This document shows positions 6,301-21,800 of a stretch of DNA of 64,000 bases, in pieces (positions within the stretch are counted from its first letter, which is position 1; each line of letters begins with the position of its first letter). Source of the stretch: Ophelia neglecta (taxonomy: Eukaryota); NCBI GenBank assembly GCA_965285935.1, contig OZ260663.1, positions 32,426,001 to 32,490,000 on the forward strand, read 5' to 3'. Made by a program: the position numbers and the translations under genes. The notes under the pieces are model-generated. The model was not told the DNA's origin. It was given only the letters and a program-made list of their open reading frames with translations, and made no database searches.

Positions 6301-9300
6301 CACCCTCTGAAAACGCCGTTCGTTGCGTTAGCCAGCCTTGGAAATCATTGTCGGCCAAGATCGGGCAAGGCGTCACACAGTGCAGTGTTTCATGTACTAT
6401 TAAAGTTTGTGCAACGGTCCCTGAGGTCTCAGTTCCTCTACTATATGTTTAAGGGAGTATCTTATGAAGGATAGGTCTCCGCGTTAGGTGAAATAGAAAT
6501 ATAAACTACAATAACATAAAGCAGCATCACAAACAGGCATGCTTAATGCTAAAAAAGTTACAATCTATAAAGGTGCTTATTGTGGCAATAACCTTAATGT
6601 CAAGCTCGTAAATATAGTCATATTTATTGCAGCTGTTCAAAGTAAATGATTTATATTTTCGCTTACAATATTCGTATCGCTACGCTTTTATTATTTTAAG
6701 TTAATCAAAAAAGCTTTTCTGAGTACTCGAAAGAATAGGTGAACTTGCAATATCACCAAACAAAAGGTAAACAAACACGTTGCAAATAATAGAGTAGATG
6801 ACCCCGAACGGTAGATTGGTGTCTTTGTTGCATTTTCCTTGGCCTTTAATTCGAGGGGGAAGGGGTTATGCTCCTGCCTGTTCAAGATTCTGACACTCGG
6901 ATGGTGGCACTGGCCTCCCGCAGCGATAATGGAGTTGGTATCGACTGAACTAACAAAGCTTTCAAGATAATGACGTGACACACGGGGAGCGTAGTAATCA
7001 AATAATTATACTTCTAATTGTAGATAAGGATATTTACTCTTACGCATGCGTTATTATCTTACATGACCAGGCTAATAAATCGAGACGATAGCTTGCGAAC
7101 AATCGCAAAGATATAACCTAGTGTTCAAAAGGGCTTCTATCGAGACAAGTGTCCTTTAAACAAAGGGCTTTAGTGTCCAGGAAAATAGATTTGCAACACA
7201 TTCTAAGTTGCAAACACTCATACTTTTGTATGCAATGAAAATAGACAATGAAATTTATATAATATTTATCTAATTAAATATACATTTTAATGTTAGAAAG
7301 ACTAGAAGCCAAAGAGTATTTTTTCCCAAAAATAACAAATAAGATTTACATTACCATGCAATATATGCTAACGAAACAACTTAAAACAAATATGATTAGT
7401 GAAATTTATAGATATACATGTATATATACAAATTTATGTACTGTATGTATGAAAAAACATAGGCCCAATATTCAAGAAGAAACCCTGAAAATATTCACAT
7501 ACAAGGAATAAAGCAATTTTTAAATCATAATATTAGGCATAAGAAATATAGATGGGGAAGCAAGAAGTGAAAGAAACATTTACCAGAGTGCTGACATACC
7601 GGAAGCAGGGGCCGGCGGCGTCAGAATATTCGCCAAATAATATAGTTCTCACTAAGCTAACGTGTATTAATCATGTTAACTGAAGTGAAAAAATGCTAAA
7701 TTATGCCTTTTTATAGTAAGTGATGTAAACAAATGTTCACCAATCAGACAGTTTTAGTGTCGTAATATGTCTCTTTAGGTTGCCAGTTAATGCTGCAGTA
7801 ACAGTGTTGCTATTCATTTCTAACGCTAGTTGGATATTTTGAGTCGGAAATAGACGATAAATGCCGACAATTACAATGCGGTTGGTCGCCCTGCCCTGCC
7901 AATGGACAAGCCGCCATGACACAGTAATATGGCAGTATACTCATCTCCCTATGTCCTCTCTTTTGGACAAGGTTAGCAAGACCAAGGTCATATTTATCCT
8001 TAGACTATGTTTCTACAATGTCTGTAGACACTGTTGCGCCAGGTCGAATACAAGTCAATCAGTTGGGAAAATTGAAAGCTTGAAATATTGGACGACTATT
8101 GAAAGCTTGGCGTATTGGACGACCATAAAAGTGTTTCAGGTAAAGCAGGGCGGATGGCATCGTGTTGAGTACAGGTAGTCTATGAGTGACTAACATGGGT
8201 TCTTGTATTACAGATTGACCAATTAAGACCCACACAGGCCCCGCCTAATCGGCATCTGCTGGTTTTTACCCCTCATCGCATCTCATCATAGTTACTCATA
8301 GCCACAATACATCCACCTCCAATTTGAGATAAAAGTCACTTCGATTAACCTTAATGGTAACAGCGGCCATAACATGCGTAATTTTCATTTGTCCAGTGAA
8401 TTATTCATCCTAGGTGGTCCGTCCATGGCTTTGTTAATTGAGAAATAGTGAAATGCATGTCGTGAGCCATCAACTTAGGACTACAAATGTCAATTTTCCT
8501 AACAGATTAACTCGATCGACATACCCAGGTATACAGTCTGTGTCACAGTTTAATGTTAAATCTTGGTACAATTATCAAGCATAATAAAACCCATTATGTA
8601 TAGTTAACATATAAAGAAAGTAGACCAACACTCGCACAATAACATGTTTAAGGGGTTAACGTTTAGAGTGGGATACATTTAAGACTTTCTCGGTATTAAG
8701 CGAGCATGAGTTTGACATTGTCATTAATTAAGAAGCAAAACATTTAGAACCATAATATTTTTAGCACCTTGAACTTGGACAAAGTTACTGCTATATCCAA
8801 GGGAAAGGTTTTCTGGTCAAGAACATGGACATAGTCCTGAGGAAATGATAGATCATGTCATCATTTTGATATTTGCGGCCATTATAACAATTCGGGTCGG
8901 GTGAAATTTAAAATATTAGTTGGGAAATAAGAATGAAGTGAATTCCTAAACCACGCATAATATAATATTCGGATACTGCTTACGATGCTTCCTACATTTC
9001 ACTTCCTGTGATTCATCTGACCTATCCACTGACACCTATATCTATTAGTATATTAAAGACCATACGACTGATTGGTTCATAATTGACCTGTTTTATCCTA
9101 AACTAACCATCACAGTATTACTACTACCTGGAACACTAAAATACATCAGCTTTAATATTCCGAGATACGATTGGCACGGGCTAGTATCAGTTATGAGTTG
9201 CTATAAATATAACACTAATTATTGTGTCGGGGTGATGTAGTTTGTGATGAGGCTAGGCCCATTAATATTGTGCGTCGCGAAACTAGTTAGTAAGGCCAAG

Positions 9301-10444
9301 TGGGCTGGTACATTGATATTACATAAATATGAGGTACTATATGTCTTATTGAGATATATATTGGAAATGAGTCATAAATTGGTTTTTCGGTAGTTTTCGG
9401 AATTATGGTGGTTCTCGAAGGCGTACTCATAATGGATGATGAAAGGGGGTTAGTTCATAAATCTAGGTGTGAGGAATAAAAATTGCCACACACCTACCCT
9501 GAATTTTTCATGTAATGAGGACATTGGATACATATTATTTTACAGCTAAGTAGAAAATAGCCTGAATCATTAGAAAAGTACGGAATATTTGAAAACGTCA
9601 TAAAAGCCACCAATGGAAATATATCATTAGTGGTATATAGCCTTAAGTGCACTCGCCAGGGGAGGCAGCCTTGGTGGTCTTGTTGCTGGTGCTGCCACCT
9701 TATTCCCCCTTGCGCAGGAGCATGTATTGCATCCAGGAAGTGACCCCGTATAATTAAGCTTTCAGATGATATAGACATTACTGCCAGCAGATAAAGTAAA
9801 TAGCAACCACTGGCTCGCAGACTATTTGATGCTGTCAATTAGGACTTAGTAACAGTCTCTATTTTTCATGACGGCGTGACAGTAAAACAACGTAAATGGA
9901 AACACAAAATGATGCTAATATAAAATGGGCACCAAATAAGTGGAATTTGCTTAACAAATAACATTTATACATATTAAGGATAATCCACAAGGGGCTTTTA
10001 GAAGTTCTTAGGCGACACTGCCTAGATAGGCTTATACATATTGCTTTTTTTAAAGTAATCTCAAAAACTTTAGCCATTAACACATAGGCTATTAGAGAAT
10101 TGGCAACATATTCGTGCAATATATTGGCACAAAAACAACAACAATAATACTCTTACTACGTGTATTTGGATGGTAAAAAATATTCACTACTGGTCTAACG
10201 TAATTTGGGATTTGTTTTCGATGCTGTTTGCTTGTATATTTAATATGGAATTTACCCAAACAAATAATTCAAACTCACTTCCTTGTACGTTATGATTTTT
10301 TTTTCAGAAAAATATGTATATCAATGTGGAAATGATTGGTAAACTTGAAACTAGTGGCTTTATAAACAAACTGCATATACTTGAGTATCAAAATAAGAAG
10401 TGCGTTAAATTTGATTGCTAAACTTCTAATATTTATATTTGTAG

Positions 10445-10513
10445 GTAAGAGTGTGGACGCCAGGGCCCTACGAACAGACGACACCCAATCCCACATCATT
10501 CATAAAAGAAACG
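10445..10513 (+). CDS. Internal exon of a prohormone-like precursor: (G)KSVDARALRTDDTQSHIIHKRN(D), with dibasic KR site
   Basis: Branch-like ttctaat at 10424-10430, acceptor atttgtag|, donor ACG|gtgagt. 69 nt, phase 1-1, open frame, GC-richer than flanks. Splices in frame to 15271. Confidence 0.7.
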
Positions 10514-11919
10514 GTGAGTACACCTACCGTCGAAAAACTAATAAATGTAATTCTTTATAAAGCTAAGACAACTTGGCTGAAATAATGATTCCAAACCCAT
10601 TTCGAGCATTTTAAAACATTTATTGGCAAACATGCATGTGAAAGTGGGTTGAAGTGAGCACAAGTTTGTTGTTGCAAATCTAAACTTGTGCAATAAAAAT
10701 GACTGATTTGAACCAAATTGATAGACGCAATTCATATGTAAAGCATAATCATGAGTTAGTACGCTTTTAAATAGCTTCTGTTTGCCACTGCAAGCAAAAA
10801 ACAACAAATCTGGACACTTTTACAGTGGACTGTAGCAACTTTATTTTCGCAAGAAGAATAGAGTATAGTTACTCGTGGGTATATAGGAAGTCACATGTTA
10901 TCAAGTTGATAGTGACCTAAAAATATATCTTGACCCAATTTTTCGAGGTCAAATCGCTAAACCTGTCCTGATTGCAGCCACTGAGTCTTTGTTAAGCCGT
11001 GTATATATATGTCACACGAACAAATACATGTGAGAAGCATCGCATACAAGCCTCAAACATGTTCAGATCTGTCACAGGCCAAAAGCCCATTACTAGGTAA
11101 AAGTGCTTCATCTTTCAAAAATAATTGGGAAGTAAACTAGTTTTTGGTAGGATTAATCCTCATTGCTTATATATGCATTCTGGATAATATATTTGGAGAC
11201 TTTTTCCGCCAAGGTTGAACTAGCTTAAGTACTTGTTAGGTACAATATGACTCATTTGTTTCTTGGCCATTCAGGTATCTAAACCATTTCACAGTGAAGG
11301 CATTAGACTAATATTCTCGCAGCAGTAATCCTTTAGGCGGGTATACGTTCTGAAAATCGTTAGAACCTTTTATGTTATATTTCTTCTCTATAATCATATA
11401 CATATATATACATTTTCATTAGCATGGTGGAGCAAGAAATCTGTAGAAGGCTTTGATCGAATAGAAAAAGGTAGGCATTGTTAACCTTCTTTCCATCGCC
11501 TTTTGATGGCATAAATTTCTTAAGTTACATAAACATACTTTATGAGCAGAAATGAATGTGCACCGAGCAATTGGAAGGTAGGGTTCTCGACAACGCACAC
11601 ATAAACCGACGTTTAAGGGATATTTTCTTATGACTATACGACCAGTCATTCCAGCCTATAGAAGTGTCGTATATTAAACTTTATTAGTAGCCTTATTAAT
11701 TATTTCAATTTTAATTTTCAAAAGTATTGCTACGTCTCAAGTTAGTGCTACATTTACTTTCAGCACACAAACAAGAAGAGGCTTCAAGATACAAGATAGG
11801 AAAATCCATAGGTAAATTTTTATGAATACATCAATGATATTGTCTTTATTTAAGCCTCGGACAATTATGTTTCTTTATACCTATTTATGCCATTGCTTGG
11901 ATATCGTCTGTATACTTAT

Positions 11920-12049
11920 GTATTTCAAGAGCTCAGTGTATTCGGCGAGAGCAACAGCCATGGTAAATGCGAAAGTGAAAAAAAAAAGTATTTCAAGAGC
12001 TCAGTGTATTCGGCGAGAGCAACAGCCATGGTAAATGCGAAAGTGAAAA
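11920..12049. repeat. Tandem duplication of a ~62-bp segment (period 68) joined by an A-run
   Basis: gtatttcaagagctcagtgtattcggcgagagcaacagccatggtaaatgcgaaagtgaaaa occurs at 11920 and again at 11988. Confidence 0.9.
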
Positions 12050-12993
12050 GAAAATTATATTAAATATCTGACATCTGACACCCAATCGTAATCCATTCAT
12101 CACAGTTTACTGCACAACATGTATTATGGTAGGGAAAACACAGTATTTATATTAGTCGATACTAAGTATCCACGCGACTTTGGACAAGTTATTGACTTTC
12201 GTGGTACGAAAGTCCCTCCAAGTTCTTGCTATAGTAAGCTGTTATAGTATTGAATCGTCTACCTGTTTTTTTTTTCCAAATCCATGCGGTTCGACCGTCC
12301 TCAACTTTGGGACAGGTCTTTTTATTAAGCAATCCTATTTTTAAATTGAGTGCTCGCAGAAGCTTGGTCATGATAGAAGTGAATCGCTATGTTCAGGTGA
12401 ATTAAATGTATACCAGAGGTAAAACTGATGTCCATATAAAAGTTGCGAATTAGTGATACACACGTTTTTCAACAAAGTGAGGCAAGAAATATACGACAAC
12501 TTATGCAAACCACTTGACAAATAAATGATAATAAGATGACAACTTTATAATTTGCGTTGGGTGACAATAAGTTTCACGTGTTCATGGATATCAAGTTTAT
12601 TAACATAAAGCTAACATCATTAAATATCCGGGTTTAAGCTTGAAAATACATAGCTAGGAAAGCGAGGACACGGCCTCTCACATTGACAAAAATCCAAGGG
12701 AAAAAATGTCCGTAGGCCATTCTTAGCCATGGGAAATACTGTCATTTTCAAGAAATCCCCCCCCCCTTTCCTTACAGGTGGACATAATATCTGTTTAATA
12801 ACAAAAAGTCCATCGAACATTAGATACGTGGAAAGTACATTTGGCCTCAGAATCAGTATAAATTGACATAGGATAAACATTTTAAACTGGGACAAGCGTC
12901 CCCGGACAAACCTTCCGCATTTTCATGAATCAATCAGGGGGTACTCAAACAAAGAAGAATAACTGTGATTCACTGCAAATAATGCCCAATCGG

Positions 12994-13135
12994 NNNNNNN
13001 NNNNNNNNNNNNNNNNNNNNNNNNNNNNNNNNNNNNNNNNNNNNNNNNNNNNNNNNNNNNNNNNNNNNNNNNNNNNNNNNNNNNNNNNNNNNNNNNNNNN
13101 NNNNNNNNNNNNNNNNNNNNNNNNNNNNNNNNNNN
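12994..13135. other. Assembly gap (142 N)
   Basis: Run of N; it lies in the last intron of the predicted peptide gene. Confidence 1.
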
Positions 13136-15270
13136 TTTATAATTTTTTAACAGTGCAAGCGTTTCATATAAATGATATAATCATATAATTTCAATTTGGG
13201 AAATCCTCAGAAATACCGGGAATGGCAAAAGATTGTTAATGCAGAAGGTTGGAAACTTAGTCTATAATCGACTGTATTGTGTGGTGTAAATCACGCAGAG
13301 AATAATACCGGCATTCCGCTTACAACAGATACCTTGACACAATGACCCTTAAAAGGCAAGAAAAAAGAGATTGATATATTTGTATGGGTCTTTTATTTAG
13401 GCTGAAATTTACGATGATTTACATGGTTCAAATCCTGAACAACGCCAGTGATTAAGCTCACCATTTGTTGTTGTATATCATTCTTGGATAAAACTTATTA
13501 TATGGGTCATGTGGTTGTCGACCTGTGCTTGATGGTCCCTGCATAATAAACTTGGCCGATATCATTAAATGTACCCTATTGGCGATTCTATATTCCTGTC
13601 GAGTATCCACTTAGACTTGCACATGTGAATTAAAGTTTAGTAACGGGTGCATTAGACTTGCATGTGACCTTACACAGTTATTAGAGAACATGTGTACTAG
13701 AACATACAAGTATGCCTTCGACATGTTCTATAGATTGCAATTTCCAGTTAAGAATTTCCCCAGGGCTACTAGGCAACACAGTTTCAACCATTTCTTCGCA
13801 TACCTTTACAAGCATGCCTATTGGCGCGAAAATTACCTTCAGGCCAACGACGAAAACGAAACCAAGGTAATAAATTTAATTTGTTCCGAAAATAACTCCC
13901 ACCTCCAGAGCATTTGTGAAAAAAGTGCAGCAGGTTTAATCAAAAAAAAAATTATTGGTGTTGAGAAATATTTTTCCTTATTTGGGTTAGAGTCGTGTTA
14001 ATATTGGGTTTCAGTGTTTTCGCCATATTTAGCTACAGATCGCTAGGTTGGCTCTGCTCTGTTACGGGCGTAAGCATGTCTTCCCGGGGGTTATTACACA
14101 CGTGCATGATGTGGAAATTGTCCAATGTATACTTCAGTATACTATTAACAGAAATTCGACCGAAGCATAATCTGAAATATAAATAACAAAACTAAAAACG
14201 TTGGCCACTAATAACATTTATAAACGAAACCGAAATTTAAGTATTTATAAAAAGAACCCAGCAAAAGTTGATATCTTCATCTTATATTGAAAAAGAGGTC
14301 GGGAATGTTAATGTCAATGATGCTTTTATCAGTTTATTAAAACTTGTGTTTTCTGTTTCTTAAAAATCGCATATATATTAATGTATTGAAAATATATTAT
14401 AATTTTCTAAGAAATTGAATGTTTTAGGTTTTGTTGTGTTACGAGTTTTAATAGTTTGGTATCTTTGTGATTCGTGTTTCTGTTTTTGTATAGGGTAAAA
14501 AAGGGAGAGATGTCATGACATTAATGGTTGACCGGCGTCCGAGCTTATATTTATCACTCTCATTTATGTATTATGTCGGAGTGTTTGCTAAATAATATTA
14601 ATTGAATTAATAAAAAAAAAGTCTTCATAATCCATCCCTATGTAAATTTAAGACATGGACACTTTTGTTAACGCTCTTGTTTTGGTTACTCACACATCTC
14701 GTATACATTTATGTTAAAAACATATATTTGACTGGCAAAAATTAGTTTTGCCCGCATAAAAATCAGGCAATAATCTTAATATATCCATGTTATATATAAG
14801 TACTTAAATATTACATATGTGTCATGACTGTCCATGCTCTATTTCTGACACGATCTGTTTAAATCAAGTATAGCTCGAACACTCAAAAAGGATAAGAACA
14901 AACAACAACCAAAACATACAACCAGAATCAAAGTTCTTGCCAATTTTTATGAACGTGACGCCGATTAACATTATGCACAAACAGCTAAGTCTACACAACT
15001 TTTGTGTCAGGGGACCTAGTCCCAACAACAATATCCTATATATATATACAAATAGTATTAACTGGTATGCAAAATGTCGTTTATCCAAATTGGTGGAGTT
15101 GTATAAAAGGCAAATAGCATGACCAAATTAATTATTCAGGTTTTACCACGGTGCATATATTCATCTTTAGTGATTTATGTTTACTGCGCACAAGCAAGTC
15201 TATATAATATTATGGTAGCTTATATGTTATATAGCTCTTGTTGCAAGTTCTCTAAAAAAACTTGTTTCAG

Positions 15271-15410
15271 ATTGTTACACAGACCAGTGTGTCTCGGACT
15301 TCGTTTGGTGTGGTCGGCAGGCCGACGACGAGGCGGACTTCTTGCAGTGTAAGCTCCAGCATCGCATGTGTGCCAGTGGGTGCTTCGGGTCAAACTTGAC
15401 CATGCCGTGA
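15271..15410 (+). CDS. Terminal coding exon: six-cysteine peptide (D)CYTDQCVSDFVWCGRQADDEADFLQCKLQHRMCASGCFGSNLTMP*
   Basis: Acceptor cttgtttcag|, abrupt GC-rich island in AT-rich DNA. The phase-1 frame gives six regularly spaced Cys and TGA at 15408-15410. AATAAA follows at 15689-15694. Confidence 0.75.
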
Positions 15411-15688
15411 GACCTGTTGCTGGCCAGGTGAGGCCAGATGGCCACACCTAGGACCAACGACAACCCTCCTAAGGCCACCCAGGACTAACGACCAGCGGGC
15501 AACATCTCGTAAACTGTCAGCTGACAGTGTAGCAACTCGCAGGAACAGGGAGACTCTTTAAACTTAATTTAATTGTTATTGCTTTCCTCTTTCGTTCTTG
15601 GCTGATGACTGTAGAACTGTTTCATGCAGACTTTAGCTAAAAAATGCATCTTTTATGAATGTGATGTTTATGGCTTTAAATAATGTTT

Positions 15689-15694
15689 AATAAA
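15689..15694 (+). terminator. Candidate polyadenylation signal of the peptide gene
   Basis: First AATAAA downstream of the TGA at 15410. A second one lies at 15780-15785. Confidence 0.35.
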
Positions 15695-18646
15695 AATAAT
15701 TACTCTGTAAACGACATTATCAATCTAAGGATCTTATTAAAATTTCAGCCTAATGACAGCATATGGGCACACGTATTGCAATAAATTGGTAGGCTGTTGT
15801 GTGCAAAACATAACTTATCTCTTTTACTTGTGAACATAATAGAAAGTGGCTTACATCTATGTTTATTATATTTATAAGTTAGAAATGACATAAAACAGAT
15901 AGCCTTGACGAGAAGTTATCAATAACCTAAGAGGTGATTAGGGAACTGTTATTTTCAAAAGATGAAATCAATTAATTTCAACACATTAGATTTATATTAT
16001 ATACATATATCTGAAACGCCAGTTATAAGATTACAAATACATTCAAATCGTGCTGTATTCTCTTGTGAGGATAGATTCTATATTTTTAAAATTAGATGAT
16101 TTAGGTGTATAATATATTGCATATTTCTTAACTTTTAACAGTACTTGTAATCATTGAAACCATTTGCACATACTCCTATTTAAGTGCAATGGACAAGCAT
16201 GCAATTTGGTGTTTGTGTTTTCCTCAAACTATGTTTGGGTATATTACAAGATCAAAAGATACGATACTGAAACAACCCATAAGTGAAATTTAAGATCTTA
16301 ATTAATTCTGACTTTGTGTTTTAGGAATATTTTTATTTAATGGAATTACAATTAGTAATTGTCTTATGTTACAATCTGACAGAACATTTTTGGTAGTCTG
16401 GCATGTTAACAGTGATTTAGTCTATAGTGATAAGCTGTACACTAACACACATCAAACAAGAGTTGTCTTCAAGGGAGATGCCACGCATGGCAAGATAATA
16501 CCAGTAGTTGGTGTTTGTAAAATAAAATTATAAAGAAACATTGTTATCACAACAAGTGACAAATTCAGGTGAACACATTAGATGATCCAAACTGTAATAT
16601 CAATATCATTCTTGACTTTCAATTCCATGTTTTGTTAGATGAATCGTAACCAAATCAGCAGTGTTTCTCATATTTAGTCTATTAAATGGAATTGCTTTAA
16701 AACACTTGGAAGTAAAACTTCTGTATACGTGTTGAATTGTTGTAAATGACGTTTCTTGTGACATGCTTTACTCTGTACATTATATTACATCTCATTGCAA
16801 CATGACACCATTGTTTTTGTTTTAACTTGTTTGTTCACTCATTACAATACAGAATCAGCTTTTATACAATTGTGTCCGACTCTTCTATAAAACACCCAGT
16901 CTATAACTCTACCTGCCTATATTCAATGACAATGGTTCAGTTTGCGATTAAAACATTGTTAATAAATAATTCCTCTCCAAGAACTGAAAATGAAAAAACG
17001 CCAGCATATCAACTGTCAACTCACATCGTTTCAAATGACGAAACTCAACTCGTCCAAACTTTTTGAGAATTTGAGCATGAATAACACGTTTAAAAATTGG
17101 ATCTAGTGTAATGTATGAGGACTGTATATGAAAGGGTAAATGTATGGTCATTGACTTTGATAATATGCCTAAGTATGCAAATACTTGCCAACGGGTGAAA
17201 TAATGATACAAATTGTCAGTTTTTCAATGAACACAATAACGAATGTTCCATCCCCCAATGTGGCATGAGTGCTCTGAGCTTATACAATGCTCATTATTTG
17301 CTCATCTATGTAATTGTTACTTGACACAAATGGAAAGCAGCTGTCAACTATTTCCAATCGAATTAATTCGACAGTTTAACATCGATTCATAATCACAAAT
17401 GCACTTTTGACAACTTTATGAAACTAGCATCTCCTTCTGACAATTTGTGCTTTGCAAACCAATATGAAAGTTATGTATACAAGGTAAGATCAAGAAAGAA
17501 CCTTTTGTCTGCCTACCGTCTATGTAGAATTGATTGTAAATGTTTGAGCCCTACCCACCAAACCCCTGGGATGCCGCCACCCACAAAATTGCTCACCTGA
17601 AGTTAATAACTATAAACACTCTCTATCTTCGGCTCATCACTAGTCATGCAACCTTACTCCTCCCTTCAGAAAATGTAATCACTGTCAGTAAAGTGGAGAA
17701 ATAGGCATTTGTTCTTTGGCCATTTTTTCTGTTCAATATCAAATTTTCTTATACATATAAACATTTCTAAATATAGACTAATCTCAATAAGTCTGAAAAA
17801 CAGTAACCATATAATATGATACATACTCACAGTTTTTTCCATTATTTCTATTTTCAAACAACCTTATACTTTCTTTTACTAATGCCATAAGTTTACTATC
17901 ACCCGAGTCAAAATTAGATTAAAAACTAAATTTAATGACAGAATCTTGACCCAACATTCTATCTTTTTATTATAAAGTGGACAGACTACCGCACAGTCTG
18001 AAAAATTAACTACCGACTGTATCTCCTGTTTTTTAAGACCACATGTATAATGCTTGACAAAATCATACATTTGTTTGTTTCAAAGCAAATATTTTGTCTT
18101 GAACATTTACACGTTACAAGAAATAGTACATGTTCACTTCCATTGGTTGAAATAGTGATTTTACATTATTAAAATTAAGCATTAAAGTTCAACAAATAAG
18201 CTCCTGATTTTCTCAAGCATCCTTTTTGATGGAATCCTATAAGGAAAGCTCCCAATATTTTGCAAAAAAGCCAAGTTTAAACTTTAGATATTTTATTCTT
18301 CAAAACTTCTACCGGGGGACATCTGGCGGGCCTAAAATGAATACATTTTCTCGATCTCAGAAATTTTGGATACGATGTACCAATATCTTTGTCCCTACTA
18401 GAAATGCTTGATTTCACAGATATTGCTATAAGCCGAATTTGAGTTTTCTGCCAGCATCGCTGCCCAAAATCATGGTTAGTGCTATTCCTTTCATATGCAG
18501 AGAGGTGATTTAAGAAGAAAAGACCAAACAGAGGAAAGCCATCCTGTAATAAAGGCCAGATTAACTGCATCAGTTGGAATAGACAGGTGTTAAAACCATA
18601 TCCCCTGTCTGCCCTTCGTCTTAAATAAATAAACAGTAATTCAGGT

Positions 18647-18808
18647 CTATAGATCAGATACATGTGAGCCATATAACATGGCCTCGACAGCCTTCCTTGT
18701 TCCTGGTTCCATATGAACAGTGGTCTGCTTGAAACACTGCTCAGCCACACATTGCAGTAATTTACATCTAGATATAGTTATCTCTCCATATAGGTACACC
18801 CCCATAGC
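18647..18808 (-). CDS. AOPEP: AOPEP last coding exon (AMGVYLYGE...AVEAMLYGSHVSDL*)
   Basis: ccttgcag|GCT ATG GGG; TAG at 18649-18647. Minus-strand AATAAA at 18297-18292 and 17971-17966. Confidence 0.92.
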   Translation of the reverse strand, partial: AMGVYLYGEITISRCKLLQCVAEQCFKQTTVHMEPGTRKAVEAMLYGSHVSDL

Positions 18809-21800
18809 CTGCAAGGAATATGAAATAATGTCAAGACTACCTTTACGTAATAAGAACCACATTTACAAGCTATTACTTTTTATAACTTACCGATAACAGT
18901 ATCCATTAGTGTTACTAAAAGAGGACAAATGTAAAGAGGCATATGCATTCGCCCACAAGAGAAAAGAGTATATTCCTGAACAAGACACCTTGGATATTTA
19001 CCTCGATCTGGTGGCAAAAATTTGGAATTTCAGGGCGAACCAAGCATGACAATACTAATCAACATATCATTTGGCTTGAAATGACTCCATCAAACGGTTT
19101 GGGGTATGGCAAGGAAGGTCAAATTTCGACAATAAAGCTCCCCCTGGTTTTAAGGGAACTCATGCCTGACAAAATGAATCTTGAGATTAAGGCGCTCAAT
19201 TAAATTTATTTTTGCATCTATATGACAAACAATTCAAGAGACATAAGAAAGCTCCCTCTGGTATCAGAATTTAGAACTTCATAGTCAATCATGCATAACA
19301 TTGCAAATCTCCATGATCAAACACTTCAATTGGCTTTCATTTGAAATGATTCCATCAAAGGGTTTGAGGACATGAGAGCAGACGACAAGATCACAAGATT
19401 CCAATAAATGAAAAGGGATTGTAAACATACCTAAAAATAAAAATAACCAAAACCAAACATTTTGTCTAAAACCACCTGCATGGCATAAGGAGACATGCAC
19501 CTACAATAATGGTTAACATCTGCAGAGATGCAAAGAGTGTAATCAATGAACAAAAAAGCGTTTAGAAACATAAGCCTTTGCCTGTAGAAAGGGATATTAC
19601 AATATTCTAACAGGCTTTGGACAACAAATAAAAACAAAAGAAGAAAATGCACTCATTGTTCTGTGTTCCCTGACTTGGTCGTTTATAGCCGCCTTGGTGC
19701 CCAATCCATGACCCCTCCGACTTCCCCTTCTTACGTAGGGGGCCACCAGGTTGCCAACCTCCCATCAATTGTGATGCTCTCTGTGTCCTATGTAAAGGGG
19801 GACCCAGCACTGCTTGACCCACCGATGACTGAAGGGGCACTCGCATTCCTTCAGCTTCCCAAGCCACCTAAGCATGAAGTTTTTCCTGTCCTCTGGGGGG
19901 CCTTACAAGTTCAGGTTTAGATGGTTCCTTGTCCGATGATGGCACTACTCTGTCTCTCCTTGGAATAAGATCCTTTTTAGAGTGTTCGAGATAGTCATCA
20001 AGGGACTGCAACAATGTCTGATATCTAAAGTGTTTTGAAAAATGAACTGACGGTGCCATTGTACTAACTCTGAGAGAAAAAATCTGAGAGAAGTGCTAAG
20101 AGATGGCCCTATTCCCTTCCATTAGCTCCAAAACCACATTTACATAATAACCTGACAACAATAAAAATAAAATTGATGCCATTGACACCACACTTTTGAA
20201 TTGATCAGCCAACTTGGAATCCCTGAGCAATGTGTTTGTAGCCCATCCAAGTGTTTGGTAACCTATGTTGGCTTAATCCTTGTCATTATGTATGATGTTA
20301 TACCTCTTTAGTTAAGTCCTTTCAATCGTCGTTCATTATGGACTCAAAGGTGTATTCCCTGAGCTATACACACAAGTTGTTCTTAGAGTGAATATTTTCA
20401 CCTGCTATTCTCACAGGACTCAGGGGTGTGTTCCTGACCTGTTCTGGCTGGCCTTATAAGCCAGAGTCAGCAGTGAATCCAAGGAGACGGTAGTCAGACA
20501 GGAAATTGATAGGAATAGGCTTTGGCCACAGTTGGTGCAGCTAGTATCTGTTGGGCAGGCTTTGCTCAATTTGCACCCTTCTTGCTGTTGGCCATGTCGT
20601 ATATGTTGACCTAAGACATGAAAAGGGCTTGATATGTTTCGCAAAGAGTAAAGATCATAACTGATCCCAGGGCACATATTGGTTAGTTTTTAGCCTCCCG
20701 CTGCCTGGTTCTTCTTAGCCAATGTGTGCAGGTCCAATGTAAGACTTCATGGCAGATTTTATTGTGAGGGACAAACATTGCATTTGGATTTAGAACATGC
20801 ACTTGTATCCCCTTATTTCTGTTTTGCTGTTGCATGAATGTTATATGTCAACAAAGTCTGTCATGCCAAGAAAACTCCCAGGATATATTATTTGGGGTGT
20901 AAAAATCATAAAATTTTATCCGCCACATTATTTTTCTGAATGATGAAGCATAGTATCCAAGAAATAAATGACTTTTACAGTATTTGGAATACCAAAGTTG
21001 TTTAAAAACTTGCGTACGAGTCTTAATTTTCAGATTTAACTTTTATTTGTTGATAGTTTTGACCAAATAGAACAGAGTGGTTGTAGGGAGGCCCTGAGTA
21101 GATAATACTTAAATACTCAAGAAAACCTTTTTCATGAGGAACTCCCTCTCTGTCACGTAATAATTACATTCAGGGTATAAGATAAAGCAGCATACATGTA
21201 GGCCACAGCAGGTTCCTGTCTGTCCTCCACCTGACAGACTTCTGCTCTGATGCTGACATCGCAAGCATCCATGTCCAAGTCACTCAGATATGCAATAATG
21301 TCAGGTCAAGTTAGCCTATCATTAGGCAAGTCAAATGACTCGCAGGTGGCCATTTGAGGTCTTGATCTTCTTTGTCGGCTGCATAAAAAAGGGGAGGCCA
21401 GCTATGAGAATTGTTGGATGTACCTTCTCTATAATCGCTAGCGAGACCATGAAACACTCTTACATCAGTGACATTCTTTACTGGTATTCCAGAGTTTGGC
21501 AGAACTCTTTGCTCATTATTCGTCCAAGGAATTCAAACTTGTCTTGGAGGAGGTGCCATTTGGAGCACTATAACTTGAACCTGAACCAAGATTCCAGTAT
21601 CTTTTTCAGCACCACTTTTATTCTTGTAATATGCTCTTCAAAAGAGGAGGCAACACCAACTAGATCTTCCAGGTACACAAGATATGTAGTCCACCGTTAA
21701 TCCGACAAGGTCAAGGCTACTGCAAGGTACCATGTGGCGCCTGCTTTAATCATGCCCATTGACATGGTGACATACACGAACATGCCATCTCTTGTTATGA

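Follow-up and report, generated by a model that had tools for sequence, protein, structure and literature searches.

A locus within a 64,000-nucleotide (nt) stretch of Ophelia neglecta DNA (assembly GCA_965285935.1, contig OZ260663.1, positions 32,426,001 to 32,490,000 of the forward strand; this whole stretch is referred to as the window, and its coordinates are used unless stated otherwise) very probably belongs, as a gene of five exons, to the WWS peptide family of neuropeptide precursors, a family that had already been named. The deduced gene would comprise five short coding exons (E1 to E5) separated by introns that are all of phase 1, with E4 being a candidate only. An initial annotation of the same DNA had recognized two of these exons, E2 and E5, as parts of a small, hidden gene, the product of which would be a secreted precursor resembling a prohormone. 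This was borne out, as both pieces are homologous to one and the same precursor family. The accompanying proposal of an undescribed family did not hold, since the pieces clearly match WWS precursors, which were named in 2021 (Thiel et al. 2021, Mol Biol Evol; PMC8557429) and are included as 'WWS' in a 2026 preprint listing 33 molluscan neuropeptides. The family is therefore already named, though obscure; the designation 'WWS peptide' is used only by Thiel et al. and the preprint of that study.

Homology to Known WWS Peptide Precursors

All sequence searches were run exon by exon. Screening of 1.84 billion representative sequences with the peptide encoded by the last exon, using phmmer, yielded 11 matches. 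The best of them was Capitella teleta ELT87048.1, which matched at E 4e-10 and showed 63% identity across 43 residues, and further matches comprised Ruditapes philippinarum XP_060556019.1, Lineus longissimus XP_064624427.1 and Priapulus caudatus XP_014670241.1 as well as several unnamed transcript contigs. The named homologues are all annotated as uncharacterised or hypothetical, and neither the accession numbers of the homologues nor the SRA run ids were found in any searchable paper. The link to the WWS family is provided by the Lineus sequence P0011, which differs at one residue from the published 'WWS peptide (MS-peptide 01)' precursor (PMC8557429 supplement); the Lineus sequence is headed 'MS peptide-1 (WWS peptide)' by Thiel et al. 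(PMC8557429). In a phmmer search against the whole library, E5 matched this named precursor with an E-value of 7.9e-4.

The similarity is not restricted to the last exon. E2, E3 and E5 each align with the corresponding part of the homologues, and for E2 and E5 the homology is far beyond chance. In the layout common to full-length family members, a signal peptide and a short propeptide precede KR and the motif N-[AIT]-W-W-[ST]-K-[KR]-[ST]; these are followed by 25-37 spacer residues and by a cysteine (Cys) domain of the pattern C-x4-C-x6-C-x12..17-C-x6-C-x3-C. In the window gene, E2 ends in KR-N and E3 supplies the WWS part, so that the dibasic KR is followed by N-x-W-W-[ST]-K-[KR]-[ST]; E5 encodes the six Cys in the family spacing, C-x4-C-x6-C-x(12-17)-C-x6-C-x3-C, together with the conserved CY, CV and H. 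For three relatives, full precursors were also present on intron-free, transcript-like contigs (P0002, P0013 and P0028), which points to expression in these relatives.

Mass spectrometry of L. longissimus had led to the discovery of the WWS precursor, which was reported, beyond nemerteans, from phoronids only (PMC8557429). On sequence grounds, the family extends further and is present, in unannotated form, in one annelid, one bivalve, one chiton and one priapulid; given this occurrence, it is older than the divergence of spiralians and ecdysozoans. The chiton member is an unnamed transcript from the raw data of De Oliveira et al. 2019. The searched parts of the Platynereis 2013 supplements contained no WWS precursor. 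Two database models of the relatives appear to be faulty. The one for Capitella ELT87048.1 (KB312526.1) is devoid of a signal peptide, its 5' exons being probably wrong. In the model for Priapulus XP_014670241.1 (P0004), the Cys domain is doubled over its first two-thirds, owing either to tandem duplication of an exon or to an artefact of the assembly.

Gene Structure and Genomic Context

Exon sizes of the relatives were obtained by mapping the NCBI proteins onto their loci. For E1 to E5, values of 67/66/45/60/170 nt were determined for Lineus and of 100/69/51/57/149 nt for Ruditapes, with all introns being of phase 1 in both cases; in Capitella, E3 and E4 measure ~48 nt and ~57 nt, respectively. 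The window gene shows sizes of 67/69/48/48 (candidate)/140 nt (Table 1). Accordingly, its exons range from 48 to 140 nt, and E1, E2, E3 and E5 agree with those of the relatives in order, size and phase, whereas E4 is a candidate only. The first intron spans ~16 kb.

Table 1. Features of the deduced WWS precursor gene (window coordinates, except for E1).
Feature	Position	Strand	Remarks
E1, signal-peptide exon (candidate)	G000:C5:32420399-32420465 (= L007:4399-4465)	+	67 nt; ~5.6 kb before the window begins; from a scan of 30 kb upstream
E2, propeptide ending KR-N	10445-10513	+	69 nt; both flanking introns of phase 1; first exon of the initial annotation
E3, WWS motif followed by KK	11423-11470	+	48 nt; both flanking introns of phase 1; overlooked in the initial annotation
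E4, spacer (candidate)	11764-11811	+	48 nt; both flanking introns of phase 1; hydrophilic; unproven
Assembly gap, 142 N	12994-13135	.	inside the last intron
E5, six-Cys domain C-x4-C-x6-C-x12-C-x6-C-x3-C	15271-15410	+	137 nt coding plus stop; second exon of the initial annotation
3' untranslated region, GC-rich start, AATAAA at 15689-15694	15411-15715	+	3' end approximate

The two exons described initially translate exactly as had been claimed, and the associated signals were all recovered. Positions 10447-10512 encode a 22-residue piece ending in HKRN, and positions 15273-15410 encode a 45-residue six-Cys piece followed by the stop codon TGA (15408-15410). Both exons are preceded by AG acceptors (tag before 10445, cag before 15271), the donor after 10513 reads G/gtgagt, E5 is entered in phase 1 and the poly(A) signal is located as listed in Table 1. 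Within E2, the stretch DAR..TDD..KRN aligns with Ruditapes P0006. The exon length of 69 nt compares with 69 nt in Ruditapes and 66 nt in Lineus, and the phase is identical.

E3 is located between these two exons. Joined to the G of position 10513, it reads A-WWSKKSV... and thus contributes the WWS motif, which is invariant in alignment A2 and represents the most conserved motif of the family. The exon is flanked by the acceptor ttttcattag and the donor AAG/gtaggc, begins with CATGGTGG as do the E3 exons of Lineus and Ruditapes, and agrees with the Capitella E3 (~48 nt) in size. The surrounding region (11390-11500) is single copy in the genome. At position 11460, inside E3, the contig of one of the DNA sequencing runs (X3) diverges with 27 unlike letters, while the contigs of the other two (X1 and X2) pass straight through; the divergence may be due to a heterozygous variant or a chimera.

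The candidate for E1 was ranked first, by heuristic criteria, in the scan of the upstream region. It encodes Met-Lys and a 14-residue uncharged hydrophobic core and ends with ...TQ+G at CAAG/gtaagc, a junction identical to that of the Lineus E1. Candidates for E1 inside the window (9247-9307 and others) were dropped, as the upstream exon was preferred. A polypyrimidine tract with cag (L007:4378-4392), 9 nt before the E1 start codon, resembles a splice acceptor, and a noncoding 5' exon may sit farther upstream of the candidate E1.

The genomic context is likewise common to Lineus and the window. In Lineus, the WWS gene is followed by a convergent AOPEP-like gene (Peptidase_M1/Leuk-A4-hydro_C; L004:38969-40713). 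In the window, positions 18662-18832 on the minus strand correspond to the terminal coding exon of an AOPEP-like gene (tblastx E 6.6e-9 to the Lineus neighbour), which converges on the 3' end of the WWS gene ~3 kb past the poly(A) signal. No Rfam match was obtained in the region 9800-16200.

Evaluation of Alternative Gene Models

Several points weigh against the reconstruction presented above. The only sequencing runs covering the locus are derived from genomic DNA, with every splice junction being deduced: three runs are listed, none of them is recorded as RNA, and on 10300-15750 exons and introns are equally covered and joints are absent. Moreover, E1 is based on heuristics and a short motif, and BLASTP of E1 against Lineus gave no match, as is to be expected for signal peptides. 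E4 was selected as a splice-site candidate and shows no sequence similarity to the E4 exons of the relatives (rank 45 of 124); furthermore, the assembly gap could conceal the real E4. Finally, cleavage at KK, disulfide pairing and activity of the products are predicted only.

With moderate confidence, 11764-11811 is regarded as the true E4. The candidate combines the acceptor ctacatttactttcag with the donor TAG/gtaaat, is open in the required frame, fits in phase and size and starts 293 nt after E3. It would yield a spacer of 26 residues as compared with 25-37 in the relatives, thereby restoring the length typical of the family. Within the readable part of the intron, it is the sole candidate passing criteria set at its own values, and on a cruder splice score it ranks second of 124, behind 12778-12834. 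Candidates of this quality were found five times in 128 kb, corresponding to ~0.14 chance occurrences in the intron sequence that is readable (3.66 kb). The alternative, to which a smaller though still substantial likelihood is attributed, is that the candidate is wrong: the true E4 would then be located in the gap or elsewhere in the intron, or E4 would have been lost and 11470 spliced to 15271, leaving a spacer of 10 residues. The dissimilarity to the E4 exons of the relatives, the chance expectation, the unread gap sequence and the fact that the direct 11470/15271 junction is also in frame are in accordance with this alternative, but annelid, bivalve and nemertean relatives all carry an E4 of 57-60 nt, and the position and rank of the candidate as well as the resulting spacer length argue for 11764-11811.

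Two further stretches of the intron, 11930-11974 and 11998-12042, were rejected as alternative E4 exons: they have no polypyrimidine tract and a weak donor, the estimated E-value is ~7, and the annelid relative does not possess the Cys in question. Positions 11920-12054 consist of a 68-nt unit in two tandem copies (98% identity). In the frame required for E4, this repeat holds a short G-K-C-E match to the mollusc E4, which was judged to be due to chance.

The assembly gap is at least 1.18 kb away from any exon of the model and, being located inside the last intron, therefore breaks no reading frame. DNA contigs of the three runs end at both gap edges, and none of them bridges the gap. Continuity across it is assumed because of the scaffold, the exon order and orientation corresponding to those in the relatives, the single-copy exons and the conserved downstream neighbour.

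The two-exon model proposed initially, in which 10513 is spliced to 15271 and KR releases a 47-residue six-Cys peptide starting with NDCY as the main product, is the least probable of the explanations considered. Its splice sites are canonical and its junction is in frame, which looked convincing because every intron is of phase 1; for the same reason, a minor isoform arising from exon skipping would stay in frame and is possible. Yet the genes of Lineus and Ruditapes possess five coding exons, and in every full-length relative and transcript contig KRN is separated from the Cys domain by the WWS motif and by 25 or more spacer residues. In the window, an intact E3 with good splice sites lies between the two exons, and its skipping would delete the name-giving part of the precursor. 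KR instead precedes the WWS motif, followed by KK and then by the spacer. It is also highly improbable that the locus is an unexpressed relic, that is, a young pseudogene of a WWS precursor gene. This would be compatible with the lack of RNA evidence for the species, but the exons found with confidence (E1, E2, E3 and E5) are open and have intact splice sites, all invariant residues are retained, the locus is the sole copy in the genome, and no differences inside exons were observed among the three DNA runs, all of which originate from one sample.

Conservation and Predicted Fold of the Six-Cys Domain

The GC-rich block at 15271-15560 occurs once in the 762-Mb genome and is not a multi-copy repeat, a finding that would have counted against the initial annotation. 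Likewise, this locus was the only one detected genome-wide, whether protein, DNA or profile queries were used, and the last-exon peptide has no paralogue. A family profile including Lineus P0011 matched E5 of the window gene at E 4.8e-16, and no other credible match was obtained in the genome. The C12 match (E 1.6), featuring four Cys and nearby stops, was discarded as noise.

Alignment A3, comprising 11 sequences, contains seven invariant columns (C1, Y2, C6, C13, C26, C33 and C37). The six Cys are thus kept across phyla. A functional role of the acidic turn and the NLT sequon pointed out initially is not supported, neither of them being conserved in the homologues. A seventh Cys is located 10-11 residues before the domain in priapulid, bivalve and nemertean precursors (P0004, P0006, P0011 and P0012), while Capitella, P0002 and the window gene do not have it. 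The odd Cys could mean that covalent dimers are formed in some lineages.

A helical-hairpin architecture had been suggested for the domain, and structure prediction is in line with this suggestion. Based on an alignment of ten homologues, AlphaFold2 predicted a two-helix hairpin for the window domain with a mean predicted local distance difference test (pLDDT) score of 86.3, consisting of a helix at residues 2-16, a turn at 17-19 and a second helix at 20-42. For the full Lineus precursor, residues 75-117 reached a pLDDT of ~95 (helices at 75-96 and 100-117), and the remainder was of low confidence. Across the turn, the positions of opposing Cys add up to near-constant sums, namely 13+26, 6+33 and 1+37 in the window domain (38-39) and 93+106, 86+113 and 81+117 in Lineus. 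As deduced here from these positions, a ladder of disulfides (1-6, 2-5 and 3-4) stapling the antiparallel hairpin would fit, because the sums are constant across the turn. Column statistics of the alignment, with good helix formers throughout and Gly/Pro mainly at positions 8, 14 and 39-40, agree with a hairpin.

Comparison of the domain with structure and family databases returned no specific relative. Foldseek gave no match at E <= 0.001, and VIA-align reported 52 chains with Z >= 5 and none with Z >= 8, all of them being generic hairpins. In Pfam, the window domain and five full-length relatives were nowhere near the gathering cut-offs, and the PDB sequence search provided no match at E below 0.88. 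The label 'neuropeptide S' (0.78) from the ESM Atlas was disregarded, since it is below the noise level of the tool itself. The sequence P0009 (340 amino acids, present in Logan contigs only, cluster of 84) contains four tandem repeats of the pattern C-x3-C-x6-C-x13-C-x6-C-x3-C and is weakly similar to the WWS domain (hhalign probability 43%, E 2.5e-4). It may reflect a wider family of hairpin domains or a chance match. Other candidates were P0007 (Capsicum) and P0010 (2,332 amino acids), the latter showing no aligned stretch in the phmmer search.

Proposed Precursor Processing and Significance

In L. longissimus, the peptide detected corresponds to the propeptide stopping exactly before KR (PMC8557429). 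Because it ends at this position, removal of the signal peptide and cleavage at KR have been shown to occur in vivo in this species. For the window gene, it is proposed that the prepropeptide would enter the secretory pathway and that the signal peptide would be removed near the conserved DAR motif. Subsequently, prohormone convertases would cut after KR, as shown by mass spectrometry for Lineus, and a further cut would probably occur at the conserved K[KR]. Both KR and K[KR] are supported as cleavage sites by the phoronid versions of the precursor, in which a longer Q...WF[ST] peptide is flanked by KR on either side (PMC8557429). The predicted products are a non-amidated pentapeptide, N-A-W-W-S, and a C-terminal fragment, which would carry the ~40-residue two-helix hairpin with three ladder disulfides. 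The pentapeptide is taken as the putative receptor ligand, and the hairpin as a co-secreted associated peptide that may serve as a carrier or in packaging, comparable to neurophysin, or may act as a second signal. This assignment is favoured because both parts are conserved across phyla.

Tentatively, the WWS precursor may be envisaged as a prohormone of ancient origin that yields two products and occurs throughout protostomes (Nemertea, Phoronida, Mollusca, Annelida and Priapulida), with the hairpin being either a signal with its own receptor or a dedicated carrier of the pentapeptide, neurophysin-like and independently evolved. As a whole, this scenario is considered rather doubtful.

The results obtained add modestly to the knowledge of this family. 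They comprise its wider range among protostomes, including a priapulid, the five-exon structure with introns all of phase 1 together with the AOPEP synteny, and the predicted fold of the Cys domain. Furthermore, a corrected model is provided for a small multi-exon neuropeptide gene of the kind overlooked by open reading frame scans and by many annotation pipelines. A cleaned set of orthologues would aid the deorphanisation of this obscure orphan family.

Comparison with Known Systems

Kinship of the domain with nemertean toxin B-IV or acrorhagin, as considered initially, found no support in the PDB sequence search, and the fold searches gave generic hairpins only; toxin B-IV is absent among the fold-search matches listed. 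Among these matches, the plant alpha-hairpinins Luffin P1 (2l37) and the Jug r 2 N-terminal peptide (9q1l) resemble the domain in featuring a two-helix hairpin, which is predicted in the case of the window gene, with ladder disulfides (Z 5.1-5.5). However, their Cys are spaced in CX3C pairs, and dozens of unrelated hairpins score equally well.

The precursors of vasopressin/oxytocin and neurophysin are alike by design and not by kinship, as they also combine a short peptide cut at basic sites with a subsequent Cys-rich domain in one precursor. In these precursors, the peptide directly follows the signal peptide and is amidated, and neurophysin contains 14 Cys and adopts a different fold. No sequence similarity to them was detected in the Pfam and PDB sequence searches.

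The proteins ELT87048.1, XP_060556019.1 and XP_014670241.1 belong to the same family by sequence, with Capitella being closest to the window gene (63% identity in the domain), but none of them is annotated as a WWS precursor. Regarding the Lineus WWS precursor, identity in the Cys domain amounts to ~44%, and the window gene is known from genomic sequence alone. Its spacer is shorter than that of Lineus, unrelated in sequence and devoid of the seventh Cys carried by Lineus, Ruditapes and Priapulus. Nevertheless, both share the layout of signal peptide (putative in the window gene), propeptide, KR, N-A-W-W-S-K-K-S, spacer and six-Cys domain with equal spacing and the residues CY, CV and H, as well as a five-exon gene with introns all of phase 1 (E4 being a candidate in the window) and the AOPEP-like neighbour.

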